DNA of 64,000 bases from Blepharisma stoltei ATCC 30299 (GCA_965603825.1 CBFDEM010000017.1:494786-558785), one strand, 5' to 3'; positions 1 through 61,094 are shown, counted from the stretch's first letter. Notes: generated by a model not told the origin, from the sequence alone. Translations and numbers: made by a program.

Positions 1-1711
1 GTTAAAATCTTATGAAGACGAAGAAAAAAATTTAATAGAAAATCAGTCAAATGCTGGAGACCATGCAAGTGCTTTAACGCTAAAGTCAAGTAAACACTAT
101 TCAGGACGAGCAAAAAAATTAATTTATAAGGCCAAGAAAAAAATCAGAGTTCTCCAATGGGTGTTATTTCTTGTGGTAAGGAAAATATAGATTTTGACAG
201 TTATCGTTGTGATGATTGCGATTATATTAAATGTGATGAATAATGTGGACCTTACGTCTTCTATGAAAATATTTTACAATCTTGGAGAAATTTTATATTA
301 TTTTGGGGTTTCTGCTGATACTGTGAGGAATCTGAACAAAGAAATAACGATACCAATTGATATTTCTCCACGCATCCAAGGGTTATCTTCAATAGTAAGT
401 GAATTAGAAACTATACAGCTTAATATTCGTTCTGATTTCAATTATTGGCGATTTTGCACAGCAGCTGAAGTTGCTGATAAACCTTTGATCCCATTATGAT
501 CTTTTGACGATGAAAATCCTCAGATTATTTATGAAAATATTTACGACATGATTTCTTTATTTAATTACCATGTAATTTTTATTCAGCTAAAACTTGTCAT
601 TTCTTCAGCCAAAAATAACCAAACCAATATGCAACATGCAAAATTTGTAATAGCTAACGGTATAGGCAAAACCTATGAATTTTTAAATCACACTATTTCA
701 GGCTTAGAAAATTGTGAAGTTGATCATATAGACACCCTCCGCTATGAAATAAGCACCCTGCTTGTTTCTGGCTTTTCTATATTTACAGGCTTAGTTATAA
801 TAATCATTTGATTTATTTTGCTTGCAGCCAAAAAAGAAGACGAGTTTTGAAATTTCATGCTGGAGCATGCACAAATTCCTTTAATGAAATTGAGAAGTGA
901 AGCTATGGACAGGCTCATTCTTGTTCATAATGACGAAATAAATCCAGAAGAACAATCCAATATAAGGAAATTGCATAACAGAAAAAAAGTTAGAACAAAA
1001 ATCGAGATAAAATACGCCTGACGAATTTTGGTATTTTTTATGATTTCTGCGTCATATTATTATTTGGTTTATTTTTATTTATATCCAGAATGCGCAAATT
1101 ATATGGCGAATAGGCCGAAATTACTTAATAATTTCAATATAAAGCGATCATTAGTATCAAGGCTTTCTATTTTTGCAAGAGATGTTTATAATCCTTCATT
1201 TATAAAATTATTCCCAAAATCCTATGATTTTCGGAATTCTAAAGAAATGTTTAATATTACTTCACAAATTCTTTTGGACAAAACCAAAGAAATAAGAGAA
1301 AACAAGTTTATGAGCATGATTTCAGGGGGGCTTAAGCAAAGATTATTTGAGAGCTGTAGCATTATGGGGTCAGAGCTTTATTTTGGCTCAGAAACAGCTA
1401 TAAAACTGACTATTTATGATGGAATTTATATCACATACCAGACCAATATTTCCGGTAAAGCTATGATTGTATATTTAGGAATTCTTGGGGAAATAGAAAA
1501 TGAGGTAGGAGAGGAATTTCAAATTGCTGATGACGATTCTTATGAGATCATCAATAATCAATTGCATGTAATTATAATTGCTACTGTTGTTTATTCAGTT
1601 GCATTGTGCAGCTTGTTTTTGCTATATTATTTGCCGTTTTTTATTTATCAAGCGAGGTACTTAAACAGATTTAATATGTTGCCAACGATCCTAAAGTTAG
1701 GAAGCGAATAA
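1..1711 (+). CDS. R1: PAS/TmcB-like polytopic membrane protein, 5'-partial (linker plus C-terminal four-TM module only); UGA=Trp; 15-nt introns 176-190 and 572-586
   Basis: ORFs 194-499, 548-811 and 1028-1711 share one frame and are separated only by TGA. Family motifs KKKIRVLQW, NCEVD, DEF(W)NF, DRL..H, RPKLLNNFNI and YYLP are present. Introns are gtaaggaaaatatag and gtaatttttattcag. Ends in TAA. Confidence 0.88.
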
Positions 1712-2004
1712 TCCATTATTTCAAGGTAGAATTTGCTTAGTTAAAAACTAAAATTATAAGCCTTTATTTATTAAATTCAGTTTTTATTAAAATTATCACT
1801 AAAATATTTTTATTTACTTAGTTTAAAGTTTAAAAATAATTGTTTTATTTTATCGTAATGGAAAAAAAATATGAAAATTATTCAATAATTTATAAATTTA
1901 AAGGACTATAACTAATAAATATTTGCAAATTTTATATTAAGCTATCTATTAAATACTCCAATATCCTAATGATGTAAATTTCATTATAAAAACTTACACT
2001 TAAA

Positions 2005-2900: not shown

Positions 2901-5900
2901 TTAATCATATTTTTCTGGCAAAATCTTCGGCAGCACTGAAAAAAGATTGAGCTGTTTAATTTGATTTTTCATGTACGGCAAATAATAAAAGAAATATAGC
3001 ACACCCAAGGCTACAGAATAAATAACTGTTGTATATATAATAACATTCAGCTGCTCCTGAATAGCATTCTTCGAGTCCCTATCAGCCAAGTCAAATTCTT
3101 CCCCAATTTCATCTTGGATAGTTTTCCCCATTTTTGAAAAGAAAATCCATTCATCATCTGTCACTTCACCTAAATTTTCAAAATTTTCAGTGTCGCCAAT
3201 AACCATGTCAAAAGCTGGCTGAGTCCCTTTATTAAGCCACCAATAAGGTGAGTCATTTTTTGCAAACATTTTTTCTTTTAATTCATGTGACAGCAAATCT
3301 AGATATCTTCCTTCTCGAATTTCATTATTTCTTTGTGTAAGCTGGCATAATGTTTGGTCTAAAATTAGCTCTGAATTTGGGAAAGCGTAAAGTTCTGGCA
3401 GATAATTATATGTATAATTAAATAAAATTTCTCTAGAAAAAACAGTTGCCCTTGACAATAAAGATCTTCGGATAATAAAGTTATCAAGTATATGAGGACG
3501 ATGCATCATCATTGTGTCTAGATTTGGGTATAAATAATTGAAAATTAATAAATAATAAGATGCTGCTATAGTAAAAAGAAGCATTAATCTAATAAAGTAC
3601 TGTAAATATAAAGTTCCTTTAACTTCTCTTTTATGGCTACTTTTTCTTTTGTTTTCTGATCCTGTCTCCACAGCTTTATCAACTCCATGTATGGTGGCTA
3701 GTCTATCTAATGCTGCACATTTTAGCTTAAAAATCGGTCACTGTGCATTATTTAGGCAATAATTTCAAAATTCGTCATATTTTCTGGATATAAGTATGAT
3801 ATACCCCATAATCACTAATATTAAAATCCCAAGAGCAAAAATTCCACATATTAAAAGAATGTTTATAGTGCTCCCAGTGCTTGCTACTCTGTCAATTTCA
3901 CATGTAACTAGCCCATTTATTGTTATATTTGAGTAATAAAATAAGCTTCCAAGTCCATTCATAAACAAAAACTTTGCGTGGTCTTGAAAATTTCTCTTGC
4001 CTTCGACTTCAGATAATAAACTTTGCCCCTGAATAAAAAATACATTATAAATGAATATTCCTATGGCGTCATACAGATTATAATATAAGTCAATTGGCTC
4101 CTTGTGGTCAAAAATTCATATTGGAATTATTGAATTATAAACAATTTTTTGACTATCACAGTCAGACCATTGACTAAAATCAGCTAATAGGGTATCTTGG
4201 ATTATTTCGAAATCTTGATTTAAATTTTTTAAGTTTTCTAAAGCATCTTCGAGAAGATCGTAGTGATTTTTTGCAATTAATCTGTTTATAGTAAGTGCTA
4301 AATCAGCTGAATACCCAAAATCATAAATTAGCTGTCCAAATTTCTTAAAAGAGCTTAATGCATTTGTATGAGACACATCATTTTTCATATAAACTAAAAT
4401 AGCAGCAACAATGACAATGACAGATGAAACCTAAATATTTCTTACAATTAAAAATAATACCCATTGCAAAATTCTAATTTTTTTAACTGAGTCAGAAATT
4501 AGCTGTTGTGCAGTGCTTGCCAAGATATTTTTATTTTTTTTTGTTACAGAGACTTTTGAAAAGTTGTCAGAATTTTCTGATTTTTTTTCATATTGTACGC
4601 TCTCTTCCTCTATTTTTTCCTGAGAATTTACATTCAGCATCCCAACAGATTCAGTTTCATTTTTATCAAAAGATTTTGCTATTGCAGAAAGGGTGCTTAA
4701 TGTATGGAATTTCATTTCTGATTTTTTCAAATTATCTACAGTAAGAAAGCTAGATTCTTCATCTTCGAACATCTGAAAAGTCCCGAATTGTGCAATTGCT
4801 TCGTGATGCTGTCCATTTTTTCATTTAAAGATTTCTTTTTCATCGTGAATTATCATCACTATACTAAGAGTTGTGGACAGCATTTGCTTTTTAATTTTGA
4901 CAAGAATTAGCTCTGTATTTCTGAATGGGATCAGCCAAGGTTCAAAATCATGCATTTTTTCTATTGAAAGCATCGGAATAATATCAGAAATGTTTTTGTT
5001 TTTTAAGTGCCTGCCTTGATATTCTAAATAAAATGAAAACATTTCAGTGTGAGCTATTATAGTTCCTTCATGAGTAGTTATTGCTAATTCTCTTATAACT
5101 GGTCTAGGCTTAAAAGAAACTAAAAAATAAGAGCAGTTATGGAATGCAGTCAATGTGATTAGCATATTGCATTCAAATAAAAACCCTCCAAAGTTCTGTA
5201 AGAATAATTTTTCATGGCAAGGTATATCTATTGATTGACATTCCGCAATAAACCTTTTCATATTATTTTCATGCTTTGCATCAAAAGGTTGAGGAATAAA
5301 ATTAATTATTGACGAGCCCAGGATATTTCCTATTGATGTTTTTAAAAATTGGGAAGCTTTATCATTTATATGTACAATTCTCCCAAAAAAATCGTCAGAG
5401 CATGATACAAGAATTGTTGCTAGGTCTTTTCCATAATTTTTTAAGTTATTTGCATCATGACGGTTAGAAAAATTTATGCTGTTTTTCTTTCTTAAAATAA
5501 AATTTGCTTCTTCATTATCATTGAGCATGTCATCAAGATAGCTTGAATAAATATCAAAGGCTTCAGGATTTTGATGCTTTTCTAATAAGTTTTTGTATCC
5601 ATCTGATATATAAAATATATGCTGCGCTGCCCTTTTCGTTAAGTTTACTAATTTCTCTATCCTTGGCAGTCTTAATGAAAATTCACCTTGCAGTTCAGCC
5701 AAAATAAAGCAAAGCTCTTCATCTTGATTTTTGATTCTGCTAAAATTTTTTAAATATTCCAGATAATCTGTATCAGCAAATAGTGCGTGTTTTTTCCTCA
5801 CAAGCCAATTAAATAATCTTCATTCTTGCACATCTCCTTCAAATGAAGATTTTGCATTTGCAATTTTTGAGAGCTTTACTCTTGCCAATCTCTCATCTTT

Positions 5901-7133
5901 TAATGTATAAAGACAAAAATTAAATTCCCATGTCACAAAAAGCTTGTCTTTAATAAAATGGCTTTCTCTTCAATATCCTAAAAATAGGCTTAAAACTTCT
6001 AATTTGTCATCAGGGTTCCCTTCTGCTAGTAAATGCCTAAAGGTTTTTTCAAATTCGTACTGATTTTTAGGATTCTTGTGTAAATTTGGTAAATTTTTAT
6101 ATCTTCTTCTAATTATTCTTATAGTAAAATAAAGCAAAACGGGAGTTAAAATTACTGTCAAAAACATCAAAATTTCTGCGTTGTCCACAATTATGGCAAA
6201 AATAAAAAATAAAATTGAAGACGAAACTGTAACCATTTTGCAAGCTTGAATAGAGTTTTCAATGGTATTGAAATATTGCATAGAATAAATGATACGTAAA
6301 TATAAGATAAATGATAAAAAAAACACAGCAATTTGGAAAGCAAAAGAGTAGTCTGAATTCCCAAAAATGACGTATAGAATAGTCATGGAAACATAATATA
6401 CTCTTCTTTCTAGGTCAAATCAGGCACACGACCTTGCTTTTAAATTTTTTTTTGAATGGGTGTGCCGTATATCACACGTAAAAGCTTCAGCAAAACAATT
6501 AACAAAAAGTAATGCAAAAATATGAAAAAGACCAAGAAAAACGCCTAAAGGCCCATATTGATACACGCTGGAAGAGATTCCTCCAGTATATTCTTGAATA
6601 ATACTAATGTCAACTGTAGAATATTTTATAACCATAACAAACATCATTGAGCTGGGGATTATACAAACTGTCGTTAAAAGCATTGCAAATTTTCTGGGTA
6701 AAATAGAAATAATTAATGGGACGTCTTTTCTCATATAAATATAAAGTCAAAAGGCTGCAAAAGAGGACAAGCATGAGCATATCAAAAATATAGTTCCATA
6801 TAAACAAAAATCCATGATATCAAAATAGGCACATATTTCGTCGTAGCTAGCATACGCAATGATCTGTCAGAAATCTATATAAGAGCTTCATCCAGCAGCC
6901 TTCATAGCTGGAGATCACCATAAGGGTGATAATTGGAGAACAATAATTATATTGATTACCACTTCATAAAAAATTTGCATTCTAAATTTTATTTTATCAC
7001 TGTATTTAGTTTTAAAAAGCTGTCCAAAAAATCCGTAAAGGTACTCTTTTACTTTGTTTGAAAATAATGATTGCGATAAAAAACCTTGAATATCGATGTT
7101 TTCTTTTTCTGCAATATTGAGGTCACCAGACAT
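2901..7133 (-). CDS. R2: PAS/TmcB-like polytopic membrane protein (~1400 aa), subfamily A; introns 4431-4445 and 4029-4043
   Basis: Eight minus-strand ORFs in one frame, joined by TGA=Trp and two 15-nt introns (gtaagaaatatttag, gtattttttattcag). Start MSGDL chosen by alignment with paralogs; an upstream ATG at 7166 is possible. PAS core IPQPFDAKH. TAA stop. Confidence 0.9.
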
Positions 7134-7509
7134 TAGCTTTTTATAAATTTTTATAAATGAATACATTTATTAATATTATTTCGCGACCAGAAATTAAATT
7201 GCATGTTCTTTTTTTTGTGGGATTAAGCACAGAGTTTCATAAATTGAGCTATTATATAAAAGTGCAGCAAGGAATGTTTTCTGAATAAATAAAGAAGATA
7301 AATTCAGAAATTTCTGGAAAAGCTCTTTGGATTTCTTATGGCCAGCAATTTTTGAAAATTAATAAAAATTATAATAATTCTTTATGTAAAATAATTTAAA
7401 TATAAATCCACGCTTTAATTTGATTTAATTTTTACATTATATATTTGAAATTTACAATTTAATTGTTTTAAGTTGCCTATTATTTCATTTTTATAGCAAT
7501 ATTGGGTAT

Positions 7510-9070
7510 CTAAGTCTAAGACCTTTGCAAAACAGAAAATCTTTAACCTTCTTTGCATAGCAATTTTAAAATATGGAATATAGTAAAAGAATAAAGCACT
7601 GTTATAATGATTATATCCCCAAACAGCTATTTATAGTGTTTTAGAGTCATCTTCTGCAAGTAAAAACTCTTCACAAAGCTTCTTTCTAACTGATTTAACT
7701 TTTGCTGTATATTGATATAGCTCAGCTATATTAAATGCATTTGAAAGGGCTAAATCTTGCATCCAATTTGCAATGTCGTTCAATGTAGCTGCCATAATTT
7801 AAAATATCGTTTTGAATTTATTTATTATTATTACTTTCTTAAATTTTTGGAATAATTCTTTTGACATTAATATGGAAAAATTTTCATTTCTAGAACTTCT
7901 ATTTTCAACTCCAATAATTCGGCAGTATGATTTGCAGATATATGAGGGGAAATTATAAAAGTCATTAAATATTTATCATATAGGTGCTTATGATTTCTTT
8001 AGTGAAATAGCTTTGATATTAAAGCTTGCCTAATATTAAAATTATCTAAAAACAAATGACACTTTACTATCGAATATTTTTAAATTGGTAAGATATGATT
8101 AATAATAAGAGGTTTCTACAAGCGAAAAAATAACTGTTCTTTATTTAATTTTTATATGAATTTAATTTATAACTTTTCCTTATAGAAAACGTGAAATTTT
8201 CTTCAAGCATTGATCTCTCTCTATTTGAATTACAGAGCAGGATTTGATAATAATATTTTTTGAACAGCTAACTGAACAGAGCAGTGCTAAATCTCTTCAG
8301 ATAAAGATAAAATCTGCCCTATTTTTAAGCTGTAATTGCTTCTAATCTCTATTGCAAAACTACAATGCATTTAATAACTAAAAATAATGAGGACACAAAA
8401 ATAAAAATCTCATAATAAATAATGTTTTTATTACCAAAATTAGAATAAAAAACAATATAAAATTTTTTATTTGCATGTCATAAAAAAAATATTCCAGATA
8501 AAATTAATAAAAATTATAGCAAACATCCAAACTACTGAAGATGCTGCGTCTGTGGTGTTCTTCTGCAAAGTTTTATTATCAATTTTTGTGCCATATTCCT
8601 CTATGTTATTCTCTTTAATTATGGAATATTAAAAATAATCAAATAAATCAGTAAATTAGATATAAAACAAATTGCTGATAAACTTGAATAATATATCTAG
8701 ACAGTAAGCAAAATATTTCAGGAAGTCTTAGCTAAAAGAAAAAGCTCAAAATATTAAAAAAATAACTCTCAGTCATTATATAGATGTAGTTCCATAAAAA
8801 AAAAGTCTGTTGTGCTTTCTTCTTCACATAAAAGGTCATAATTTAAGTAGCCTATGAGCTTTCAGAATTTTCCCAGCTTTTCCATCCAGAAATATCTAAA
8901 TTCGAATATCAAGCTAATGAGACAGCTTGCAATGCTGGTATAGCATTTAATTTTTTGTTGATTTCAATATGCACTCAGACTTGAAAAAATGACTCAAAGA
9001 TTTATTAGTCTCGCATTCTATTTTTCTAGTAAATCTTGGCTTTGCAAAAATTGTATTGATTTCATTAATA
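7510..9070 (-). pseudogene. Decayed, internally deleted R-family copy
   Basis: Minus strand retains N-terminal motifs (LQAVSLA(W)YSNLDISGWKSW ~8870-8935; DF..FYGT ~8780-8810) and C-terminal motifs (LDNFNIRQ ~8025-8050; EEFLLAEDDSK ~7640-7673; LFFYYIPYF ~7565-7595). Many stops and frameshifts. PAS region not seen. Confidence 0.7.
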
Positions 9071-10033: not shown

Positions 10034-13000
10034 ATGATTGGCGACATAGACTTGACTGAAAAAGATAGTTCAGACTTCAATATGTTTTTATCTCAAGCTT
10101 TATTTGCAAGCAAAACCAAAGAATACCTTTATGGCTTCTTTGGACAGCTTTTCAAGGCAAAATACAGCCACAAAGTAAAATTCCGAACACAGCTGTTTTA
10201 TGAAATTCTTATCAATTTTATCATTATTCTGCAGCTGTCTCCTTTATGGTGATCTCCATCTATGAAAGCTTCTGGATGAAGCTCATATATAGATTTCTGG
10301 CAGGACATTGCCTATGTAAGCTATGACGAAGTTTGCGCTTATTACTCTATTATGAATTTTTGCCTTTATGGGACAATTATATTAATAGGATCTTGCATCG
10401 GGTCATTTGCAATATTTGGATTTTATATTTACTGAGGAAAAGAAATCCCTATGATACTTTCCATTTTGCCAAGAAAAATAGCAATGCTAATTACTAATGT
10501 TTTAGTTATTCCAAGCACCATGATTTTTGCTATGCTAATAAAATATTCAGTAGCTAAATATAGCAAAATCCAAGAATACGCTGGAGATATAAGCGCCAGC
10601 GTCTATGAATATGGATATTTAGGCGTTTTTATTGGCCTTTTTTTTCTTTCCTGTTTAATTTTTGTTACACTTTTTAGCGAGTCTTTTAGCTGCGATATGA
10701 AGCATTCCCACTCAAAAAAGAATATAAAAGCTCGGTCTTGTGCAAGTTTTGACTTATGGAGAAGATGGTTTTATATGTCAATGAGCATCCTATATATTAT
10801 TTTTGGGAATTCTGAACACTCATTGGCTTATCAAATCGTTATATTTTTAGAAGCATTGTACTTTTTCTATATATGCGTCCAATCAGGGCAGTATTTTAAT
10901 ATAATAGAAAACTCTATTCAGGCTTGCAAGCTTGCGATAATTGCTTCAATCTTATTATTTTTCATTTTTGCACAAATTATGGACAGTGCTCTGATAATAA
11001 CGTATTTTACACTGTTCATAGAACCAATTGTTATATATTTGACTGCCAGAATAATACACAAAAAATATCAAAATATGTCAAATAATAAAAATCTTCCAAG
11101 AAATCAGTATGAATTTGAAAGAAAATATCGCCACTTGCTGATTGACAAGAGCATTTGTGAAAAATCAGAAGTTTTGCATTTATTTTTAAAATTTTGAAGA
11201 GAAAGTCAGTTTACAAAAGACAAACTATTTGTGATATGGGAATTCAATTTTTGCCTTGACATTATGAATGACGAAAGACTAGCCAGAATAAAACTCTCAA
11301 AAATTGCCAATGCCAAACCCTCATTTGAAGGAGATATACAAGAATGAAGGCTATTTAATTGGCTTGTAAGAAAAAAACACATATCATTTCCTGATACAAG
11401 TTATTTGGAATATTTAAAAGAATTCAGCAGAACCAGAAGCCAAGACGAAGAGCTCTGCATGATTTTGTCTGAGCTCCAGGCAGAATTCTCATTAAAAGTC
11501 CCTAGGATCCAGAAATTGGTAAATTTGGCAAGGAGATCGGCCCAGCATATTTTATATGTGTCAGATGGGTATAAAAATTTGATAGAAAAATACAAAAAAT
11601 TGGAGTCTTATGAAATATATTCAAGCTATCTCAGTGATATTTTGAGTGACCAAGAAGAAGCAAAATTTATTATCAGAAAGAAAAACGGGATTAATTTTTT
11701 TAATGTTCATAGTGAAGATAAAGGATTGGAAAGCTATGGCAAAGATTTAGCAACTATCCTAGTGTCTTGCTCAGATGAGTCTTTTGGGAGTATTGTATAT
11801 ATCAATGAAAAGGCTGCGCAGCTGCTTAAAGCGTCAATAGGAAATATTATGGGATCTTCTATTATGAACTATATTCCTCAGCCATATGACAAAATGCATG
11901 AAAATTTCATGAGAAATTTTATACTTGAATGTAGCTCAATAGAACTGTCCTCTCACAGTAAACTATTTTTCCAGAGCCACGCTGGATTTATAGTAGAAAG
12001 CAGTTTTTTAATCAAATTGACCGCTTTTCACAATTGTTCGTATTTCCTAATATCTTTCAAGCCTAGAACCAATATAAGAGAAATAGCCTTGGTTTCTAAC
12101 GAAGGCTATATAATTGCGCATAGTGAGATGTTTTCGTTTTACCTAACAAATGAAGTCAAAATTATAAAAAATAAAAATTTATCAGAAGTTTTGCCTCTTG
12201 GCGATATAGAAAAAATGAAGGATTTTGAGCCATGGCTGCTCCCATATAAAGACCGAGAATTGATTCTGCTTAAAATCAAAAAAGCTATAAAAAACTCATC
12301 TCTTAATATCATTATCCTGATCCACGATGCAAATGAAATTAAAAAATGGAAAGAAGGGGAACCTCACGATATTCTTACGCATTTAAAATCATTTCAAATG
12401 CTTGAAGACGATGACGAAACTAATAAACCAACGCTAAGCCCAATAAATCCAAAAGCTTTACGTGAAGTAAAATTCCAAACAATTACCGATTTTCCTATTA
12501 CCACAAAAGTCATGGACAAGTCTGACACAGACATTTTCTCCCCCTCACATGGGGATTTTCACGAAAAAACCTTCCAATCAAGTGAAGCTTTTGAGAAAAA
12601 ATCAAATTCATCAAAATATTCCTCATCAAAAAGCACAGGAAATGATTTATTAAACCGCGCAAATATGCTCATATTTAACACCAAGCGAAAAATAAGAGTA
12701 TTGCAGCTAGTTCTGTTTTTAGTCGTAATAAATATTTAGATGTCGTCAGTCATAATCACAGTTGCTGCAATTCTTGTCTATATGGAAAACGACGTGTCTC
12801 ATACAAATGCATTAAGCTCTTTTAAGAATTTTGGGCAGCTTGTATATGATTTTGGGTATTCTGCAGATTTATCATTAACATTGGACACATTAATTAAAAA
12901 TAAAAGTTCTGAAGAAAATATAAATACTGCAATAGATAATTTGCAAAATCTTGTACAAGACTTAGAAAACCTACAAAATTCCCTTTTTGACGATTTTAAA

Positions 13001-14266
13001 CGATGGGATTATTGTAAAGTTCATAAAATTTCTGATTCATCAATAATCCCGATTTGGAATTTTGATCAAAAACAGCCGGTAATTGCTTATCAAAATTTAT
13101 ATGACGCTGTTACAGGCTTTATTTCTAATGTGATCTATATTTAGGGAAAAAGCCTGATTTCTTCTGTTAATGAAAACTATGAAAATAACGCAAAATTTTT
13201 ATTTATTAATGGATTAGGAAATATGTTTTGGAGTTCAGCTTTTATTATGGAAGGATTAGTGGATTGTGAAGCTGAAAGAGTCAGGGATTCTGGAAATAAT
13301 ATTAATATTCTTTTAATATGTGGATTTTTGACTTTAGGGATGCTGGTTTTTGTAATTATAGGGTATATTATTCTTGTGTCAAAAAAATATGACGAATTTT
13401 GGAATTTCATTTTAAATCATGCCCAGTGGCAAATGTTTAGGCTGAGATGTAGAGCTATAGATAGATTAGCTACCACACATGGGGTAGAAAATACTATGGA
13501 GGCAGCTGTAGATGAAAAAAGGATAGCTGGAATTACTCGAAAAATAAAAAGCACTATTTATTTACAATACACATGAAAAGTGATGCTGTTTTTTGGTATT
13601 GCAGCTTCTTATTATTTATTAATTTTCAATTACTTATACCCCAATCTTGATACTGCTATGACAAACCGCCCAGAATTACTAAATAATTTCATAGTAAGAA
13701 AAGCCCTTCTATCAAGATCAGCTGTTTTCTCTAAAGAAATTTATTATGAATATACCTATTTCCTTTCCCCAAAACTATATGGTTTCTCGAACTCGAAAAG
13801 TATTGAAAATTGAACTATAAATTTATTAAAAGACAAAAATAATGAAATTAAGGATGGAAAATATTTTGATTTAATTTCTTCAGAATTAAAGCAAAAATTG
13901 TATGAAAAAAATAACTCGACTATTGAAATTTTAAGCGAAGGGACTCAAGCGGCGATTGGTGTTATAATTGCAGATATTGAAAATTATGAAAATTTAGGAG
14001 CTTTAGACAATAACAATATTTTTGACTTTTCGAAAAAAGTTAAAGCAATCCAGGATCAAATTTGAGAGGAGTTTCATTTGGCTGATAGAGACTCAAAATA
14101 TATTATAAACAGTCAGCTTGCTACGATTATAAATACAACAATCATTTATTCTATTGCTGTATGTGCCTTGTTTTTCTTTTATTATTTTCCATATTTAAAT
14201 CTCCAAATCAAGCAATTACAGCTGTTTTCAGTTCTGCCAAGAATTTTAACCTTAGAGATTGATTAA
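10034..14266 (+). CDS. R3: PAS/TmcB-like polytopic membrane protein (~1400 aa), subfamily A; introns 12725-12739 and 13130-13144
   Basis: Single frame across seven ORFs with TGA=Trp. Introns gtaataaatatttag and gtgatctatatttag (GTG start). PAS GSIVYINEKAAQLLKASIGNIMGSSIMNYIPQPYDKMH. TAA stop. Confidence 0.92.
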
Positions 14267-15637: not shown

Positions 15638-18600
15638 ATGTCTTTCGAGTTTCATATTGACCAGAAAGAAAGTGTCCAATATAGCGATTTCCTGACACAA
15701 TCACTATTTTCAAGCAAAATTAAAACTTATTTTTATGGGTTCTTAGGAAGTCTTTTCAAAATCAAATATCATATAAAAACCAAGCCGAGAGTCCAAATGC
15801 TTTATGAAGTCATAATAAATTCTGTCATGACTTTGCAACTAACAACCTTAGTATGATATCCAGATTTGGGTATTGAGGGGTGGGCATCATATAAGATATT
15901 TTGAAAATGATTAGGAATTGTAAGCTATGATCAAGTTTGTGCTTCTTGAAACATAATGGGTTTTTGCTTTTATGGAACTTTAGTTTTATTAGCAATTTGC
16001 ATAGGCTCATTTTGGATTTTTGGGACTTATATATATTTTAAAAAAGAACCCCCAGTGTTTTTAGCAGGCTTTCCACAAAAAATCGCATTTTTTTTAACAT
16101 CAGTCTGTCTTATTCCAAGTACAATGATTTCGCTTATGGTATTAAGATATTCTTTTATACCAAAAGAAGGCGTTGAAGAATATGATGGATTTTCATCAGG
16201 AGGAACTATAAATTTTGGAATTCCTGGAGCAATTTTTTCAATTATCTGTATAATCTCATTAGTGGTTATCAGTGTTTTTTCTGAGCTATTTACTTGTGAT
16301 ATTAAACATTCCCATAGCAACACAAATCTTAAAGCAAGATCTTCAGCTGCTTTGGATTTTCAAAGAAGATGATTTTATGTGTTTATGTGCTTTGCCTACA
16401 CAATTTTTAGTGATTCAAATATCATAATTCATCATATTATTTCAGCAATGTATTCCATTTACTTATTCATAAAAAGCATAGTTGTCTTACAATATTATAA
16501 TGTATTTGAAAACTCTATTCAAGCATGTGAGCAGGCTTCAATTTCAATGACTCTTTTGATTTTTATTTTTGGGCAGATAATGGATAACGCTATGATAACA
16601 GTGTTCTTCACCCTCTTTCTGCAGCCTCTAGTATTATTCTTTACATTTACAATTACAAAGAAAAATTACCAAAATTTGCCCGAAATTGGAACAACAAATA
16701 TAAGAAATCAGTTCGATTTTGAGCGAAAATTCAGGCATTTGCTAATTGATAATAGTCAAGAGAATAAAGAAAAAGTTTTAAATTTATTCAAAGAATATTG
16801 AAATTTAAGCTTAGTCCTTAAAGACAAAATATTTATTATATGAGAGTTTTATTATTGCCTTTATTTAAAAGACGAAAGATTAGCAAGAATAAAATTATCA
16901 AAAATCTCAAGCGTAAATTCCTCAATTGAAGGAGATATCCAAGTATGAAGAATTTTTAAATGGTTGGCAAAAAGTAAATATAAGCCATTTCCAGATGTAA
17001 ATTATTTACAATATTTAAAAGAGCTCGGCAGTGTTAAAAAGTTTGACGAAGAATTATGCCTCGTTCTTGTTGAATTGCAAGCAGAATTTTCATTAAGATC
17101 ACCACGAATAGACAAGCTTATTAAATTAGTTAATAAAACTTCAACTAGTATCAAAGAAACATCAGAGCGCTATAAATCACTAATAGAAAAACACAAAAAT
17201 TTTGAAAGCTATGACCTATATGCAAGCTTTTTAGACAATATAACAGGAAACCATGAAGAAGCCAATTTAATTAATAGGAAAAAAAACAATATAAGCCACT
17301 CTCAAAAATATGACGACAATCGGCTAGAAAAGTACGGAAAAGGGGTTGGGGTTATTCTTGTCTCTTGCGCAGCAGAGTCTTTTGGGTCTATTGTATACCT
17401 TAATGAAAAAGCTGCAACTACTTTGAAAACTTCGATATCAACGATCCATGGGTCTTCTATCATGACTTTTATTCCTCCTCCTTATGATATTTCTCATGAA
17501 AAATTGATGAAGAAGTTTATTTTTGACTGCATATCAACCCAGGTCTCATGCCATCAAGATTTGGTGTTCCAGTGCACTGATGGATTTTTATTAGAATGTG
17601 ATACATTAATCAAATTATCAGCATTTCATAATTCAGCTTATTTTTTGATTTCATTTAAGCCGAAAAAGACATCAAGGCACATTGCTTTGGTATCAGATGA
17701 AGGATTTATAATTTCTCATTCAATTTCGTTTCCTTACTATTTTTCTAATGAAAAAAGCTTAAGAAATCGGCTAATTTTAGAAATCATCCCAGATTTTCCT
17801 AATTTAAAACAAGATATTCCTTCGGTTTTTAGCTATAATGGAAAAGAAATTGGTCTAGTGAGCATAAAACGAGAAATTAAATTAAAAACGCTGAATTATT
17901 TATTAGTAATTCATGACTCTGATGAGTTAGTTAAGTGAAAATTAACAGGAGATAAAGAAATTCAAGAAATTGACCATACTAGTAAAATTCCTGATGAAAT
18001 GGATTTGTCAATATCAAAAGAGTTCAAAAAAAGTGATAAAGAGCTAAAACTACCTGAAATGGCAATTTCAAGAAGAATGGTAAAATTGAGTTCAATTTTA
18101 CCTCATAAGCTTGATAGCGTAAATGTTATAGATAATGAAGAAATTAAAGAAGAAGGAAAAGCGGTAAGCAATGAATCCTCAAAGCATTCCTCAACAACTT
18201 CAAGCTCTATAAACTCCAGATTTTCAAAAAAATTGCTTTTAGAATCAAAAAGCAAAATCAGAGTTTTGCAATGGGTTTTATTTTTTGGGGTAAATATTAT
18301 TTAGATGGCTTCAACGCTCGCTTGTGTTATAGGGATTTTAGCTTATATGGCAAGCGATATAACCCACACAACAGCTATGAGTGCTTTCAGTCGCCAAGGA
18401 AACATTTTATTTGATTTAGGATATCTATCAGATTTAAGCAGAACACTTGATAGAGGAAAATTACTGAACGCAGGAGCATCTACATTGAACGTTTATTATA
18501 ACTATGTTGGAAATCTTACAGCCACAATAGAAAATCTTCAAAACTACTTATTGGATGATTTTCGACAGTGGAGCTATTGTCCATATTCAATAATAATTAG

Positions 18601-41280: not shown

Positions 41281-41980
41281 TGGATTTGGCTTTATAATGT
41301 GATTTCCTTATTATTTTAAACAGCAATCCATCTATTAAATATTTATAATTTAGTAAATTGTGAATTTAATTGAATTCTTAATAACTTAATATTTTTCAAG
41401 ATAAATGATATTAAGATTAAAATATAAATGCCAATCAATTTATAATTTAGCTATCTGCTACCTTAGACCGTTGAATTTTTATAAAATTAAAGATTAGCCA
41501 ATTTTGGGAACTATTTTCAGAATTTCTTTGGTTTTAGGTAAAATTGTCGTAAGAAAAGCAATTTAAATGTTAAAAATTTTATATGATCACGATGGAAAGT
41601 TTTATGTACGTTATTTACTTTTGGGTGATTTAAATTGGTGATTGTTCTATAAATTTCAATTAGGAACTATTATTTTATAATCAATTTAATAGAGTAAATA
41701 TTGTTGATTCTTTTGATTATTCGACTTTTAAGGAAAAGGATGGGATTTAAATATAACGCATCGAAATCGTTAAGATGCATTAGGAAAGGGTTGGCCATAT
41801 AACTGAGAGTATAAGTGACTGCAGTTTAATAGAGGATACTAAATTTATATTTTTTAAAGCTATATAACTAGCCTTTAAGTCATGATAAATTCAACTCCTG
41901 TCTTATTCAGATCGGTAGCAGATTTATCGAACCAATAAAATCTTATCATGGTTTTTAAAGCATATTTATCAAATAAATTA

Positions 41981-46236: not shown

Positions 46237-49200
46237 TTATAGATCTGATCCGATTTGCAAAATACTTGGCAGAATTGAATATAAATTGAGCTGCTTGATT
46301 TCACTATTTATTGAAGGGAAATAATAAAAACAAAATAGCACGAGAAGAGCCACAGAATAAAAAACAGATGCATAAATAATCACATTTACTTGTGAATCGA
46401 TGATGCTTTTGGAGTCATGGTTAGCCATTTGATACTCCAAATTTATTTGATTTTCGATGCATGTGATATGATACGAAAGCTCTTCCATTTCCTCTTTTGA
46501 TACATAATTTTTATTAGCGATATCATAAAGGTCATATTTTGCAATTTCTATGCTTGTAAATGAGCCAAAACTCAGCATTGAAGTCCCTTTAATTTGTTCA
46601 TATATTTCATCTCTTAATTCTTTTGACATTAAATTCGAAAATTCTTTTTGTCTTAATTCGTCGTTTTTGTCAAAGAGGGAAGCTGCGGTTTTATTTAACA
46701 TAATTTTAGGGTCTGCGAAGTCATAGATGGTTGGGAATGTTTCTTTTAGGTAAAATGATGATTTTTCTCTAGCGAAAATTGAAACTCTTGATAATAAGGA
46801 CCGTCTTAAGTTGAAATTATTTAGTAGCTTAGGACGGTTTATTAAGGATGTTTCGCATATGGGGTATAAATATAGCTGGACCAATAAATAATAATTTAGT
46901 GTGATAGCAAAAAAAATCAGAAGCCTTATTGTATATTTTATATAAATTTTGGTAGCGACCCTTCTTTTGATTTTATAAAAATTTCTGCTGATATTTTCAT
47001 CATTTTTATATTCAATGCCATGAATTGTTAATAGTCTATCGATAACTGCACTTTTTAATAATAACAATGAAAACTGCGCATTATTTAGTAAAAAATTTCA
47101 AAATTTATCATAATTTCTCGACATCAGCACAATAAACCAAAAAATTACCCCAACTCATATAGAAGTAGCAATTACGCCAGCTGTTAAAAATAGCACGACA
47201 TTCAGTCCTATCATTTTTATTTTATCTATTTCGCATTCTTCTATATCTTTAATAGCATTTTCAGTATATTTATAAGCAAGCCCAAGACCATTTATTACTA
47301 AAAATTTTGCATGTTCTTTATAATTTCCTTTATTTGATTTAACGTCACTAATCATATTTTGTCCCTAAATAATTCTTACATGATAAATAAACTCTCCTAT
47401 CATGTTATAAATATTTTCGTCCGATATTTTTGGCTTTTTTTCTTCAAAATTTCATAAAGGAATTTTATGATCTGTTGCAATATCATAAGCACTACAATAT
47501 TTTCGGTCATCAAAATCAGATATGATGCTATTTTGGATATTAATTAATGATAAAATTGTATTTTCTAGCTTTTGCGTGTCCAAAGATTGAGAATTCGCTT
47601 GGATTTCTATATCTAAAGCGCTTGAAAAATCAGCTAAAAGCCCTAAATCGTATAAAAGTTCTCCTAAATGTGTAAAAATAGTCGGAGAGGTGCTTAAGGG
47701 AATGTCACTTGTTACATAAACTAATATTGCAGCCATTGAACTGATGGCTGAAATAATCTAAATAATTTTTACCAATAGGAAAAATATTAATTGTAAAATT
47801 CTCAGCTTTTTTTTAGTTTGAAGCGCCAAATCTTGTGATTGCTCTAATTATAAAGTACTTATTTTTAATATAGAAAAAGTGCTGCTACTAGCATCACCAT
47901 AAAAGGAATTTTCGTTAAGCGCAGGACTTAAATCCAGTGTAGAGCTTTCGTTTAAATAACTTCTTTTGTTCCCATCAAAAATCTTATCAAATTGGTATTG
48001 GAACTTAATCATTTCAAAGTTTTTATTTTCAAATTCATTTGTTTCTGAATGAAAAATTTGTTGCTTATTATCATTTTCTTTAATTTTTTTTATTTCTGCT
48101 TCATCATTAATGATAAAAATAATATGAAGTTTTGTAGATTTTAGCATTTTTTGTATATACACTATAAGTCGGTCCTGGTCTTTTATTTTTAAGTTTATAG
48201 GCTCATTTGCCTTTTGCATGTCAAAGCCTGGTAGAAATTTTAGTATATGTTTACATTTCAAATTGGCTTCGGAATGCAAAATAGTGCTAGAAAAATGCTC
48301 AGTATGGCCAATAATTATTCCAAGCTCTGTTATTAGAGCCATTTCTCTCTTAGCAGCGACTTGTTCAAAAGAAATTAAATAATATGCAGAATTATGAAAT
48401 GCTGTAGCTTTTATCATGATATTACACTCTATTAAAAATCCTTTATAGTCTTGTAAAAATAGCCAATCGTTATAAACTTCTATCGTGTTCGATGAGTGTA
48501 AAAAATTTTTCATCCATTTTTCATGGAGCTGGTCATAGGGCTGAGGAATAAAATTTCATATTGGAGAATCTAAAGCATGATTCAAAGTTATTCCTAAAAT
48601 ATTCATAGCTTTGTCATTAATATAGACAATTTTACCAAAAGAATTGTCAGCACAAGTAACTAAAATTATGGCTAAATTTTTCCCATAATTTTCTAAATTT
48701 TGATTTTCGTTTCTTTGGATAGTCACTTCAAGGCCGTTTTTCTTTTTATTTATTTTATCTGCGTCTTCATGATTACTCATGATATTTTGGAGGAAGCTGA
48801 TATAGTTTTCATAGGCTTCAACATTCTTATATTTCTCTATTAGGTTTTTATACCCCTTATTAACATTTTCTATAGAACAGCAAGCTTTTCCTACTATGAA
48901 TTCAAGCTTTCTTACTCTGGGTATTTTTAAAGAAAATTCTTCTTGTAATTCTATTAAAAAATCACATAATCTTTCGTCTTGTCTTTTTATTATAGCGAAT
49001 TCTTTTAGATATTCCAGATAAATAGTATCTGGAAAAGAGTGGCATTTTCTTTGGACTAGCCAACAAAACACCCTCCATTCTTGTATATCGCCTTCAAATG
49101 AAGACTCAAAGTGGCCGATTTTTGATAATTTAATTCTCGCAAGTCTTTCATTTTTCAATATTGAAAGACAAAAATTAAATTCCCAAATCACAAAAAGCTT

Positions 49201-56912: not shown

Positions 56913-59900
56913 ATGCCAAATAATTCTCAATCAAAAAAGAATGAGGTAAAGGATTTTCAAAGTTTTTTTGCTCGATCATTATTTTCAAGCAGCTTTAAGA
57001 ATTACTTTTATGGATTTTTCGGCCAGCTTTTTAAAGTGGGGTATAACAGAAAAACAAAGAAAAATACTCAGCTCGGTTATGAAATTTTTATCAATACCGT
57101 TTTCGCACTTCAGGTAGTATCACTAGCGTGATATCCAAATATGAACGTGAATAATTGAACTTCATATAAGATCCTCTGACAATTAATGGGATGGGCAAGT
57201 TATGACAGCATTTGTGCAAATTTCGGGATAATGAATTTTTGCTTTTATGGAACAATTTCTCTACTTGGAATATGTCTCATATCGTTTACAATTTTTGGAT
57301 TTTATATATATATTAACAAAGATCCGCCAGTTTATATATCATTTTGACCCCGCAAAATTGCTAAACTACTTACAACATTTTGCTTAATTCCAAGTACCTT
57401 GATTTTATTAGTGGTAGCAAAATACTCATTAATTGATGCTGAAAAAATCGATGAATATGGCGGTTTACCTTCTTCTATGCTTGATTTTAACCTTCCAGGA
57501 TTTTTTGTTTCGGTTTTGGGGATAGTAGTTTTGTTCTCAATTAACATATACTCAGAATATTTTTCATGTGACATTAAGCACTTTCAACCTAAAAAAAATA
57601 TAAAATCAAGATCATGCTCTCTTTTAGACTTTCAAATAAGGCTTTTCTATATTCTGACTTGTGTTTCATTTGTGGTTTTTGTAAATCAAGCAGTTTTGAT
57701 CCATCAATCAGTTTTGCTTTCTTATTCTCTTTTTATAGGCTACAAATCGTTTTATGTTTTGCAGTACTTTAATATTCTAGAGAATATAATAATAGCTTGT
57801 AAGCTTAGCATGATTTGTTCAACACTATTGTTCTTTATTCTGGGAGAGCTCTTAGACAGTGCTTCAATTATTATTGCATTAACAATTTTTCTGCAGCCAG
57901 CCTTATTTTTATTAGTAATTAAGCTGGTGAGAAGGAATTATGCAAGGCTTAAAAATAATGCAGCGAGCCTGAATAACCAGTTCGAATTTGAAAAAAAATT
58001 CAGACACCTTTTAATTGATGAGGATTATGAGAATAAGTTTGGAGTTCTGGATTTATTTAAAACTTACTGAAAAAGACATAATTTCTATAAAGATAAGCTA
58101 TTTGCTATATGGGAATTTAACTATTGTCTTTCAATAATAAAAGATGAAAGATTAGCAAGGGTAAAATTGTCGAAAATCGCTAATTTGCAAACTTCATTTG
58201 AAGGAGAAATCCAAGAATGGAGGCTTTTTGCATGACTTGTTAAGAGGAAATGCAAAGCTTTTCCTGAAACAAGCTATTTAGAGTTTTTAAAAGAGTTCAG
58301 CAGAATTAGAGCCCAAGACGAAGAACTTTGCTATGTGCTGATAGAGTTTCAGGCAGAGGCATCTCTAAAAGCTCCAAGAATTGATAAAATTATAAACTAC
58401 TCGGAAAGAACAGCGAATTATATAAAAATCCTTTCCGAAGATTATAAAAACTTGTGTGACAAATATAAAAATGTTGAAGGCTTTGAAATATATGGGAGCT
58501 TTCTGGAGAATATCACAAATAATCATGAGGAAGCAGGATTAATCAATAGGAAAAATAAAGGGCTCGATTATTACAATAAGCATAATGAAGCAAAAAATTT
58601 AGAAAACTATGGAAAAGATGTGCCGATATTATTGGTATCTTGCTCTGATAATAATATTATGTACCTCAACGAGAAAGCTTCTCTGATACTAAAAACTTCT
58701 ATAGGAAATATAATTGGCACTTCATTGCTGAATTTTATTCCTAAACCTTTTGATGCTTACCACACATCAACAATTAAAGAATTTGTGTTTAATAGTAGCA
58801 CAGTTGAACTATCATCGCATAAAAATTTATGTTTCCAAAATGTACAAGGATACTTAATAGAGTGCAATTTTCTAATTAAATTGGCAGCATTTCACAACTC
58901 TGCATATTTCTTAATTACTTTTGAGCAAAGAAAAACTGCACGCGAAATTGCGATTATCTCAGATGATGGATTTATTTTAGGACATTCTGAGCTTTTCCAT
59001 TCATATATTGGTTCTACGTTAAAAAACTTAAAAGGTCAAAACATATCAAGTGCAGTTCCTTCTTTAGAAATAACAAAAATGAAAGACTATGAGCCCTGGA
59101 TAATACCTTTTAATGATAAAGAGATTGCTTTTATTAAATCACAAAAGCATATAAAGTCCAAGATAATAAATGAATTTAAAATCATTCATGACGATTTAGA
59201 AGTAAAAAACTGAAAAGAAGGACTCGATAATGATCAATTAAAGCAATTGGCTAATTTCGAAATAGAAAAATCTCAAATTGAAGAAAACGACTGAAGGGGC
59301 GTTCAAGCTCAATTTCTTTCAGCTAGTAATGCTCCTCTCTTACCAAGGTCCTCAGCTGAAACAGAAGTTTGCAACAATGAAGAATTCCAAGTAAAAGAGA
59401 TTCCTCCGAAGCGTAATGAAGACAAAAAATCAGGTACTGAAGATTATTCAAAATCATCAGCAAGCTCAAAATTTTCTAATAAAGCTAAAAGCCTACTTTC
59501 AGATACAAAAAGAAAAATCAGAATCCTCCAAGTCACGCTATTCCTCGTGGTAAGAAACATTTAGGTATCTTCAGTAGTTGTGATAGTTTCCGCCATTTTG
59601 GGCTATATGATCACTGATGTGTCATATACGACATCTCTAAGCTCTTTCAAAAACCTAAGCGATCTTTTATATGATCTTGGGCTAGCTGCAGATTCAGCAA
59701 GGCTTATAGATCTTAGTAAGCTAACAAACGCATCTGATGAACAAATAAATAGCTATATTGCTGGTCTAGAAAAAATAATATTAGACTTAGAAGCTATCCA
59801 AGGCACTATTTTAGAAGATCTCAGCCAGTGAAGCTACTGCTCAAGCTCAGAAATTGTGTTAAATGCTATTATCCCTTTACTATATTTTGATACTTATAAT

Positions 59901-61094
59901 CCAAGCGTAAAATATTCAAATTTATATGATTCGATATCAGAAATTATTTTTAATGTAATTTTTAAGCAGTGCAAAGGCATGATCAAAGCCATTTCAGAAA
60001 ATGAATCGTATCTCAAATATATTAGATTTATTCAAACCAATAGTGCAGGATATCTTTATGATCGTGCAAATTCAACAATGGACTGGATTTCTGATTGCGA
60101 AATAAAAAGGATAAAAAATACTGGTACATATATAAATTTCCTTTTAATTTCTGGATTTTTCGCACTTGGGATGCTGGTCTTAGTTGTTGTTGGCTATATC
60201 TTTCTGGTATCACGAAAATATGATGAATTTTGGGGTTTTATTTTGAATACTGCGCAATCAGCATTGGCTAAACTTAAGAGCTCAGCTATAGATAGGCTGA
60301 TGCTTATTCATGGAATTGATTATAACTCAGAATTAAATATGCATATTTCAGGAAATCAAAAAAAAAGAAAAGTAAGGACTACTTTTTATTTGCAATACAT
60401 CTCGAGAATTATGATTTTTTTCGTTGTTGCTGCTTCTTATTATTTTTTGATTTCCCTCTATCTTTACCCAGATTGTGAAGATTTAATGGTTAATCGTCAA
60501 AAGCTTCTTAGTAACTTTAATATGAGACGATCAAATATCAGATGACTCTCAATGTTTTCTCGAGAAGCCAATTCTCATTATTTCGAAAAAAATTCTCCTC
60601 AATATATTCAATTTCCCAATGCTTGGACGAGAATGAATACAGCCTCAGGCATTTTAAAACTGAAAAACAAAGAACTCAGAGAAAATGGATTAAAAAATTT
60701 AATGTCACAAGAATTGAGGGAAAATATCTATCGGAAGGTAGATTCTAGCCATGCAATTTTAAACTACGGCACAGATGCAGCAATTAATTCAATTATAGAA
60801 GATTGTGAAACTAAGGGAATTTATCAAGTTTTGACTAGCACAAATGTCATCTCAATGCTTGCAGATATAGTAGAAATCCAAGACGAAATAAGCCGAGAGT
60901 TCTTATTGGCAAATCGTGACTCAAGAATTCTTATACATGATAAGTTAGATTCTATTATAAATACAACAGTAGCGTATACTATAGCACTATTTATGCTATA
61001 TTTTTGCTATTATTTACAATATTTGAACAGGCAAATTAAGTATCTTAATCGATTCTCAATTCTTCCAGAAATCCTGCCAATGGATCTGGAATAG
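56913..61094 (+). CDS. R12: PAS/TmcB-like polytopic membrane protein (~1383 aa), subfamily C; introns 59550-59564 and 59955-59969
   Basis: Single frame. Introns gtaagaaacatttag and gtaatttttaagcag. PAS IPKPFDAYH. TAG stop. Last intact gene before the telomere. Confidence 0.92.

Follow-up and report, generated by a model that had tools for sequence, protein, structure and literature searches.

The closest described genes are those of OG0000018 and OG0000052 in Blepharisma stoltei, whose products were reported to have an N-terminal domain of at least seven transmembrane (TM) helices and, in some, a central PAS domain, and which form large contiguous clusters, some of them at contig ends, accompanied by shorter, eroding pseudogenes (Singh et al. 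2023, PMC9942806 SI). These are almost certainly the same family as the genes considered here. The account in that supplement does not include the link to TPR_TmcB, the FixL-like motif or the C-terminal module with four TM helices and a double bundle, nor does it give selection estimates or a functional proposal. The one studied relative is Dictyostelium tmcB, for which a regulatory role in cAMP signalling during sexual development has been reported. Both Dictyostelium discoideum TmcB and the present family have a polytopic membrane domain and, after it, a helical TPR_TmcB region (Pfam PF25474), and many of the B. stoltei paralogs are named 'TmcB/TmcC TPR repeats domain-containing protein' in UniProt.

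The window, which is the whole stretch of 64,000 nucleotides that was analysed, comes from MAC contig 17 of B. stoltei and holds those 61 kb of a tandem array that lie nearest the telomere. The first-pass annotation had proposed a ciliate with a nonstandard genetic code and, indeed, reading UGA as Trp and removing 15-nt introns yields intact models of about 1,400 codons that match public proteins. Specifically, (i) the total stop-to-stop ORF length roughly doubles when only TAA and TAG are treated as stops, (ii) in a table-4 tblastn search with one copy as query, 11 copies are recovered at full length and a twelfth is truncated at the window start, each of the 12 giving a single in-frame HSP, (iii) all in-frame TAA and TAG codons lie inside 15-nt GT..AG introns and (iv) TGA and TGG interchange among paralogs at invariant Trp columns. 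The window contains 12 intact paralogs of 1,366-1,405 aa (at least 12 of about 1,400 aa had been predicted) and two decayed remnants, as had also been anticipated, and gene spans cover about 75% of its length, in line with the three-quarters originally estimated. The features are as follows, with g3 serving as the exemplar for domain coordinates:

1..1711, + strand: g1, the last 564 codons of the intact 1,373-aa paralog P0009, which begins 2,455 nt before the window does
2901..7133, - strand: g2, intact, about 1,405 aa, with the top Pfam scores of the window (TPR_TmcB 32.8 and PAS_9 27.5 bits)
7493..8998, - strand: decayed remnant that retains about 80 residues from the N-terminus and about 170 from the C-terminus, the middle being gone
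10034..14266, + strand: g3, intact, 1,400 aa, identical to P0167
10151..11074, + strand: g3 N-terminal polytopic TM domain, about 8-9 helices
11075..11704, + strand: g3 cytosolic helical region, including TPR_TmcB (PF25474) and the KDERLARIKL motif
11723..12088, + strand: g3 PAS-A, carrying the FixL-like IPxPYxxxH motif
12089..12436, + strand: g3 PAS-B, a degenerate PAS domain
12437..12706, + strand: g3 linker, Ser-enriched and poorly conserved
12707..14263, + strand: g3 C-terminal module (TM9, four-helix bundle 1, TM10, loop, TM11, four-helix bundle 2, TM12, short tail)
12725..12739, + strand: g3 intron 1, 15 nt, within the codons of TM9, at a position common to all 12 genes
13130..13144, + strand: g3 intron 2, 15 nt, at a position shared by the 11 genes compared for it (g1 and g3 to g12)
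15638..19831, + strand: g4, intact, 1,387 aa, identical to P0161
20828..25030, + strand: g5, intact, 1,390 aa, identical to P0162
25190..25422, + strand: decayed fragment of an N-terminal TM domain, 60% identical to g5
26284..30474, + strand: g6, intact, P0002 with a start differing by 2 aa
30792..34988, + strand: g7, intact 1,388-aa model, of which public P0171 begins at residue 242
35368..39609, + strand: g8, intact, 1,403 aa, identical to P0165
41981..46174, + strand: g9, intact, 1,387 aa, the copy furthest from the rest, with which it shares 38-43% identity
46237..50382, - strand: g10, intact, 1,366 aa, identical to P0001 (CAG9317131.1), covered by RNA-type contigs from 4 runs
47365..47379, - strand: g10 intron 2, lacking in a run X2 contig of 569 nt and so spliced out
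47844..47858, - strand: g10-specific intron, 15 nt, masking an in-frame TAA, present in the public model and outside the contig coverage
52284..56498, + strand: g11, intact, P0160, 1,394 aa once the CAG-ended intron 2 is removed
56913..61094, + strand: g12, intact, P0163, 1,383 aa, the final gene before the telomere
61990..64000, + strand: telomeric repeat (TGTTAGGG)n, reaching the contig end

Intron 2 ends in CAG in g1, g11 and g12. Public B. stoltei proteins equal the models for g3, g4, g5, g8 and g10 and nearly equal those for g6, g7, g11 and g12. The genes are invisible to a standard-code ORF track, as had been pointed out, yet they are hidden in that sense only: all 12 are already in GenBank/UniProt, and the clusters are described in the PMC9942806 supplement.

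The array on contig 17 comprises at least 32 copies, the 12 genes of the window being its end, and the family amounts to at least 92 scored loci genome-wide; extra stops were seen in some copies elsewhere in the genome. About 0.9 kb separate the stop codon of g12 from roughly 2 kb of telomeric repeat, whose unit agrees with the published one and which runs to the contig end, this being also the window end. The proposed chromosome-end location therefore stands for this array, which abuts the telomere, and fails for the family: with contig 17 excluded, 19 of 59 copies (32%) are found no more than 100 kb from a contig end as against 28% expected by chance, so that no enrichment near contig ends was found among these 59 copies, and large arrays sit in the interior of C32, C46 and C2. 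'Subtelomeric' describes the contig 17 array only, not the family as a whole. The genome paper itself warns that MAC contig ends carry little meaning (PMC9942806).

The domain layout proposed at first pass was recovered throughout: an N-terminal TM domain, a motif-bearing region that proves to be TPR_TmcB, a PAS and a degenerate PAS domain, a Ser-rich linker and TM-loop-TM twice. According to hydropathy profile and AF2 model, about 8-9 membrane helices precede residue 350, and four polar residues among them are near-invariant (Q66, D97, K169 and H223). This domain has the same fold as a 421-aa protein cluster of Heterolobosea, in which it stands alone. No solved structure matched it (best Foldseek E 0.3, TM-scores about 0.1; VIA rows across this part with rmsd of at least 16 A), a weak negative as the domain was never folded alone. 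The motif KDERLARIKL...S.EG..QE sits within the Pfam TPR_TmcB match, which, at the gathering score of 27 bits that defines membership, lies above threshold in g2 (32.8 bits) and in the paralogs P0003 (30.9), P0018 (38.7) and P0052 (39.7), and slightly under it, over the same region, in g11 (26.8), g3 (23.6) and g10 (22.5-24.1). By this match and the polytopic membrane domain N-terminal to it, the family is of the TmcB/TmcC type, as had been suspected; the likeness to the Dictyostelium family rests on PF25474, for which several of the window genes score just below threshold.

For PAS-A, g2 reaches 27.5 bits with PAS_9 against a threshold of 27, and among 122 family representatives PAS_9 matches 52 and PAS matches 38 at E<=0.01 (best 1.5e-8). 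The family PAS profile matches PAS structures in the PDB, including the heme-PAS domain of FixL (1d06) at E 1.2e-6, and in this alignment a conserved His falls on the column of the proximal, heme-ligand His. We take this residue, in the F-alpha helix of PAS-A, to be in register with FixL His194/His200. All 12 window genes keep it, as do 93 of the 122 representatives, a hydrophobic residue replacing it in the remaining 24%. Judging from this one motif, PAS-A possibly binds heme. The degenerate PAS-B was recognised by hhalign with a probability of 84% (E 7e-6 across 31 columns), and the linker that follows contains 11-21% Ser compared to 7-10% overall.

The C-terminal module was modelled by AF2 with pLDDT 92.8 and pTM 0.87. 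In the model each of the two TM-loop-TM units carries its loop as an antiparallel four-helix bundle, and the loop between TM10 and TM11 is cytosolic and conserved (W..RL...HG); bundle 1 has a nearly invariant Cys pair, and basic residues border the cytosolic ends of the TM helices. The 4HB sensor folds suggested at the outset were recovered for these loops. More specifically, VIA-align scored single loops against bacterial sensors at Z 14.5 for McpN (rmsd 2.1, 120 aa), 12.9 for HK9, 12.7 for PilJ, 11.9 for NarX and 10.6 for Tar, where Z of about 13 is often reached by helical bundles by chance (according to the tool's own note), and both loops jointly against the NIT domain of NasR at Z 18.2 (268 aa, rmsd 4.2), compared with at most 13 for unrelated rows. 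In these predicted models the likeness is at the level of fold only: Pfam 4HB_MCP, NIT and PilJ had no match at E<=1 among 70 C-module sequences. As a lead only, a language-model neighbour carried PilJ, at 0.86. Pfam models for output or effector domains (MCP signal, HAMP, HisKA/HATPase, GGDEF, cyclase) were unmatched in both domain pieces and full-length paralogs.

Purifying selection was detected in every domain of every copy tested. Overall omega (dN/dS) is 0.15-0.23, with frames open in 12 of 12 genes despite the divergence, as claimed, and by part it ranges from 0.06-0.20 in the TM, TPR and PAS core through 0.14-0.34 in the bundles to 0.25-0.43 in the linker (averages per domain, at dS of 0.84-2.7, which is close to saturation). 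Conservation is highest in the TPR block, and the N-terminal TM domain, at 0.11-0.20, is among the better conserved parts; in the bundles omega never comes near 1. For the loops the rate of evolution is 1.5-2 times that of the core made up of TM, TPR and PAS, in keeping with the notion of variable external loops, and since they are also predicted to be four-helix bundles of bacterial type, this fits sensor loops on the outside that are linked to a PAS domain on the inside. With a smallest dS of 0.84 and most copies less than 50% identical, the duplications are old. Of the suggested birth-and-death array, the tandem, diverged and intact copies interspersed with pseudogenes are upheld; for diversifying selection on the ligand-facing parts, which such a repertoire may be expected to show, the figures are a bundle omega of 0.14-0.34 against 0.06-0.20 in the core, with dS near saturation. 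Transcription and splicing were seen for g10 only, where contigs of low depth from 4 runs of one study are confined to the gene body and one of them lacks a 15-nt intron.

The best explanation, to which we give a probability of about one half, is that this tandem TmcB-type array, with its 8-9-helix domain, TPR, PAS and double bundles, encodes two-sided transmembrane sensors; a sensory or receptor function is plausible. Such proteins would read both sides of the membrane: the paired extracytoplasmic bundles would act as binding sites for a small ligand, in the manner of NIT, PilJ and NarX bundles, and the cytosolic PAS domain would sense another cue, which, through heme, could be O2 or redox state. 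As kinase and cyclase domains are lacking, the signal would be relayed through the invariant juxtamembrane loop and through the TPR, its target being either the N-terminal membrane domain or bound partners, and the diversity of paralogs, highest in bundles and linker, would provide differing specificities.

The missing signalling output domain can also be read as a sign that the N-terminal 8-9-TM domain is a transporter or ion channel, with TPR, PAS and bundles as regulatory parts (cf. PAS in KCNH channels), in which case the main job of the family would be transport and not perception. The conservation of this domain, its near-invariant polar residues and its existence as a stand-alone 421-aa family in other eukaryotes all speak for such a role, which we nevertheless regard as tentative and on the whole unlikely, as no known transporter or channel fold was matched (weakly negative, as noted above) and a gated channel would itself be a receptor, so that the two readings overlap. 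Quite unlikely, in our estimate, is a role as non-sensory membrane proteins of the cortex, of trafficking or of organelle structure, in which PAS and bundles serve protein-protein contacts and the copy number is simply the legacy of old segmental duplications that a gene-rich MAC genome tolerates. The age of the duplications agrees with it, as do a Stentor homolog that stands on its own outside any array, the generic use of four-helix bundles and TPRs as interaction modules and the fact that several unrelated TM families cluster likewise (genome paper, PMC9942806). It sits less easily with purifying selection on all domains of all copies tested, with the retention of a specific FixL-like motif in every window gene and with an ectodomain pair closer to dedicated ligand-sensor domains than to other bundles (Z 18.2 against <=13).

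A largely dead array, be it of pseudogenes or of misassembled repeats at a contig end, is hardly credible. The two remnants in the window and the extra stops mentioned above would point that way, and the genome paper suspects the clusters of causing assembly breaks (PMC9942806); this reading is contradicted by frames open over about 1,400 codons in all 12 genes after removal of the 15-nt introns, by omega of about 0.2, by the transcription and splicing of g10, by protein differences of 32-66% among the window copies, which are not those of collapsed repeats, and by a contig that terminates in a telomere.

The TM-bundle-TM topology is that of the bacterial sensors NIT (NasR, 4akk), McpN (6gcv), PilJ (8wdf), NarX/NarQ, Tar, TorS and HK9, and those with a single bundle superpose on each loop (Z 10.6-14.5, rmsd 2.1-3.3 A, 112-144 residues), whereas identity is only 7-13% with no Pfam sequence match, and the HAMP, kinase and methyl-accepting outputs are absent from the present family. 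Here a single chain carries both bundles, on four of its TM helices, rather than having them brought together in a dimer. RmFixL (1d06) shares P-x-P-Y-x-x-x-H with the family PAS profile, its His on the heme-ligand column, but the significant alignment (E 1.2e-6) covers the first half of the PAS domain only; full-length PAS alignments with DosP (EcDOS) are weaker (E 0.04-0.08), and the kinase or phosphodiesterase partner domain of FixL and DosP is lacking here. Nearer relatives occur in Stentor coeruleus, where OMJ68749.1 and OMJ93845.1 (1,368-1,377 aa) have the full N, M and C architecture, and in Fabrea salina, of which an MMETSP1345 transcript shares a 90% cluster with a full-length homolog. 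The Stentor and Fabrea homologs are about 20-25% identical to the window family, and at the one Stentor locus looked at there is one gene instead of an array. The family is conserved across heterotrich ciliates.

With one copy used as the query under translation table 4, tblastn recovers 11 full-length copies in the window and one that is cut by its start, each as a single in-frame HSP at 39-67% identity, and with 12 open frames and Pfam PAS matches the first-pass description of an array of intact, diverged, polytopic PAS paralogs proves accurate. The 12 intact genes (g1 to g12) cover about 75% of the window, the truncated g1 being an intact gene of 1,373 aa whose start lies 2,455 nt upstream. 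All in-frame TAA and TAG codons of the paralog frames fall within 15-nt GT..AG introns, and the spliced models measure 1,366-1,405 aa. Re-reading the DNA with table 4 and 15-nt introns, as had been proposed, yields models that match public proteins: they are identical for g3, g4, g5, g8 and g10 (the g10 protein is CAG9317131.1 of Blepharisma stoltei, letter-for-letter) and nearly identical for the others. The spliced models served for alignments, dN/dS and the comparison with public proteins, and the database searches used stop-free exon pieces or public proteins. The introns, and the two decayed remnants that bear out the claim of interspersed decayed copies, are as follows.

Introns and decayed copies in the window
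12725-12739 in g3 (exemplar gene, plus strand): intron 1, inside the codons of transmembrane helix TM9; equivalent site in 12/12 genes
13130-13144 in g3: intron 2; same position in the 11 genes covered (all but g2)
47844-47858, minus strand: g10-specific intron of 15 nt that masks an in-frame TAA; removed in the public model, outside RNA contig coverage
7493-8998, minus strand: decayed remnant
25190-25422, plus strand: decayed remnant

The terminal TAG of intron 1 is in frame, so that intron-blind ORF callers end the protein there, which accounts for the numerous publicly predicted proteins of 850-910 and about 1,010 residues. In g1, g11 and g12 intron 2 ends in CAG rather than TAG; it therefore creates no stop, is missed by a stop-based intron scan and was recognised only against the public models. 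Separately, the public model of g7 (P0171, 1,147 aa) begins at frame residue 242, while homology along the open frame reaches back to the usual start (30792-31514 in the window); judged from the sequence, this looks like N-terminal under-annotation.

At about 29% GC the window is AT-rich, and its last 2 kb or so consist of TGTTAGGG repeats. An internal telomere at this end was rejected, since contig 17 stops at the window's last base. Summed long-ORF length in the window doubles when only TAA and TAG are taken as stops, and in invariant Trp columns TGA and TGG interchange among the paralogs. The assembly comprises 64 contigs and 41.46 Mb, and the published description of the B. stoltei genome (64 telomere-to-telomere contigs, CCCTAACA telomeres, UGA as Trp and introns of 15-16 nt; PMC9942806) agrees with the window data on all of these points. 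No tRNA genes or Rfam families were found in the window. Two intergenic blocks stand out. Between g8 and g9 (39700-41400) there is a GC-richer stretch (0.37) without a long ORF, a low-copy repeat that is 81% identical over about 1 kb to another contig of the same genome (C2:766451-767484), with fragments on C64 and C56, and which may be a decayed mobile element. Between g1 and g2 (1750-2880) the DNA is C/T-rich (GC skew -0.24, GC 0.34), and C20 and C40 carry weak, partial copies of it.

The central exon encodes Pfam TPR_TmcB (PF25474) and PAS, both above threshold in g2 and several paralogs, and PAS_9 is matched in 52 of 122 family representatives. Searched against the PDB, a central-region profile finds the FixL heme-PAS structure 1d06 (E 1.2e-6), and the family motif IPxP[YF]xxxH of this first PAS domain (PAS-A; residues 564-685 in g3) lines up with PEPYRHEH of FixL. 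The aligned His, which 12/12 window genes and 93/122 representatives have, corresponds to a FixL His that we take, by FixL numbering, to be the heme ligand. The stretch of about 115 residues that directly follows PAS-A repeats the N-terminal PAS core as a degenerate second domain, PAS-B (hhalign probability 84%, E 7e-6, 31 columns). A weakly conserved linker comes next, 11-21% of it Ser. Nowhere in the proteins was a kinase, cyclase or other output domain detected.

The C-terminal module (TM9-bundle 1-TM10-loop-TM11-bundle 2-TM12) was modelled with AlphaFold2 from a 70-sequence alignment (pLDDT 92.8, pTM 0.87), and the model predicts four TM helices with extensions that form two helical bundles. 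A Foldseek search of the PDB with this module had no significant hit (best E 0.04). In an exhaustive VIA-align search, bundle 2 (model residues 301-447) superposes on McpN (Z 14.5, rmsd 2.1, 120 aa), with further matches to HK9, Adeh_2942, NarX and TorS, and bundle 1 (residues 21-174) matches PilJ, McpS and Tar. Helical bundles can reach a Z of about 13 in VIA-align without kinship, a level exceeded when both bundles are placed jointly on the two-bundle NIT domain of NasR (Z 18.2, rmsd 4.2, 268 aa). The Pfam models of these bundle-sensor families have no sequence-level match and nothing consistent was found on the C module; profile searches against PDB sequences gave no match for either the N or the C module. 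Given cytosolic PAS domains, the bundles would have to lie on the outer or lumenal side of the membrane, and basic residues lie beside the cytosolic TM ends. Bundle 1 carries two nearly invariant cysteines, and R1101 and H1106, which belong to a W..RL...HG motif of the short cytosolic TM10-TM11 loop, are among the module's invariant residues.

For the N module (a TM domain of about 8-9 helices, residues 40-350, plus TPR_TmcB; pLDDT 93.9) the predicted TPR part matches TPR proteins. The best Foldseek hit of the module in the PDB is not significant (E 0.3), and the membrane part has no credible match among solved structures. VIA-align on this model is dominated by the TPR part, and the SK channel rows that it gives for the TM part were discarded as not credible (rmsd >=16 A). 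The membrane part shares its fold with a ciliate TPR_TmcB cluster and with a cluster of 421-aa Heterolobosea proteins (TM-score 0.76 by target).

Selection was estimated per domain, as the first-pass annotation had suggested, and omega is 0.15-0.23 overall with no region near neutrality.

Omega by region (Nei-Gojobori, code 4, seven closest pairs)
TM, TPR, PAS-A: 0.06-0.20
Two bundles: 0.14-0.34
PAS-B: 0.12-0.60
Linker: 0.25-0.43

With dS of 0.84-2.7, close to saturation, these values indicate that the copies are old and constrained. The expectation that the paralogs are transcribed held for g10, where contigs from four runs of one 2022 study cover the gene body only (46,251-50,432) with no flanking intergenic DNA, and where a 569-nt contig lacks exactly the 15 nt of intron 2 (47,365-47,379); the gene is thus transcribed and spliced. 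For g9 there is one 191-nt contig only. The suspicion that the genes are mostly pseudogenes was rejected on the open frames, an omega of about 0.2 and a transcript, and a dead array can in practice be dismissed.

The array is larger than the window. Using the central 463-aa exon piece of g3 as the query, at least 92 loci were scored genome-wide among 186 candidates, 32 of them at 366-556 kb on contig 17, where they form one run of 9 genes and another of 23. The window is the tail of the latter, and the array continues upstream of the window unbroken: the preceding 10 kb (contig 17, 484786-494785) hold the start of g1, one full minus-strand copy and the end of a third. Other arrays are internal to their contigs.

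Internal arrays
C32: 151-210 kb of 835 kb
C46: 386-429 kb of 795 kb
C2: 440-455 kb of 849 kb

Of the 59 copies that are not on contig 17, 19 have a contig end no more than 100 kb away, where uniform placement would predict 28%. The term "subtelomeric" therefore fits the contig 17 array, which does adjoin the telomere, and was rejected for the family as a whole. Ends of MAC contigs are moreover reported to have little biological meaning owing to pervasive alternative telomere addition (PMC9942806).

Among 1.84 billion proteins, the N module matched only 285 cluster representatives (E<=1e-3). Those with names are all from heterotrichs (Blepharisma stoltei, Stentor coeruleus and Fabrea salina); the rest come from metagenome contigs, where identical contig sizes recur between members of different clusters, and there are hints that some such contigs carry several paralogs. 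At the one Stentor locus inspected (OMJ93845.1; MPUH01000036.1, 129288-145637) the lone copy lies about 2 kb from a contig end between unrelated genes, and tandem amplification may be Blepharisma-specific, or at least not universal in heterotrichs. A word-indexed homolog search returned Blepharisma proteins only and gives no view of Dictyostelium TmcB or other phyla.

The array itself is not new, as genes and clustering are already public. GenBank and UniProt list every one of the 12 genes, either as "PAS domain-containing protein" or "TmcB/TmcC TPR repeats domain-containing protein". The supplement of PMC9942806 describes a few transmembrane orthogroups that form large contiguous clusters, some at contig ends and including "eroding pseudogenes"; two homologous groups among them, OG0000018 and OG0000052, with at least seven N-terminal TM helices and a central PAS in some members, are almost certainly the present family in all but name. 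A literature search for Blepharisma or ciliates together with PAS found no study of these proteins. What is added here is the fold assignment of the C module, the FixL-like motif, the selection profile, the true array size and the lack of a family-wide subtelomeric bias.

On the identity, intactness, architecture and constraint of the family, which are firm, a functional reading can be built. The best one, to which a probability of about 0.5 is given, is a two-sided transmembrane sensor without enzymatic output, and the earlier receptor hypothesis was a reasonable one. The external paired bundles would bind a ligand, and the internal PAS, possibly heme-bearing, would read a second cue; relayed by the invariant juxtamembrane loop and the TPR, the signal would reach the TmcB membrane domain or partners. 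The main rival, a regulated transporter or channel, partly overlaps this sensor reading and is rather unlikely; a known transporter or channel fold without PAS, which would have spoken for it, was not seen, PAS being present and the TM part having no credible structural match. Somewhat less probable again is a non-sensory membrane role with neutral growth in copy number, to be read beside the constraint measured in every domain.

Within the sensor reading, it is a bold and rather doubtful proposal that the roughly 100 heterotrich paralogs form an undescribed eukaryotic sensor class, in which an NIT-like extracellular bundle pair and a cytosolic heme-PAS would be combined with a TmcB-type membrane domain as effector, for example a gated ion path for ciliary reversal. 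If the membrane domain were the effector, a single polypeptide would integrate chemical with oxygen cues and need no kinase, cyclase or G protein. Ciliate behaviour towards chemicals, oxygen and light is rich, and to our knowledge few of their receptors have been identified. Dictyostelium tmcB is cited as a regulator of cAMP signalling in sexual development, and the widespread, almost unstudied TmcB family would gain a structural framework. Kept in Blepharisma, Stentor and Fabrea, the present family offers a concrete candidate sensory repertoire, in which a bacterial-type ectodomain sensor fold is joined to a FixL-like PAS motif under purifying selection.
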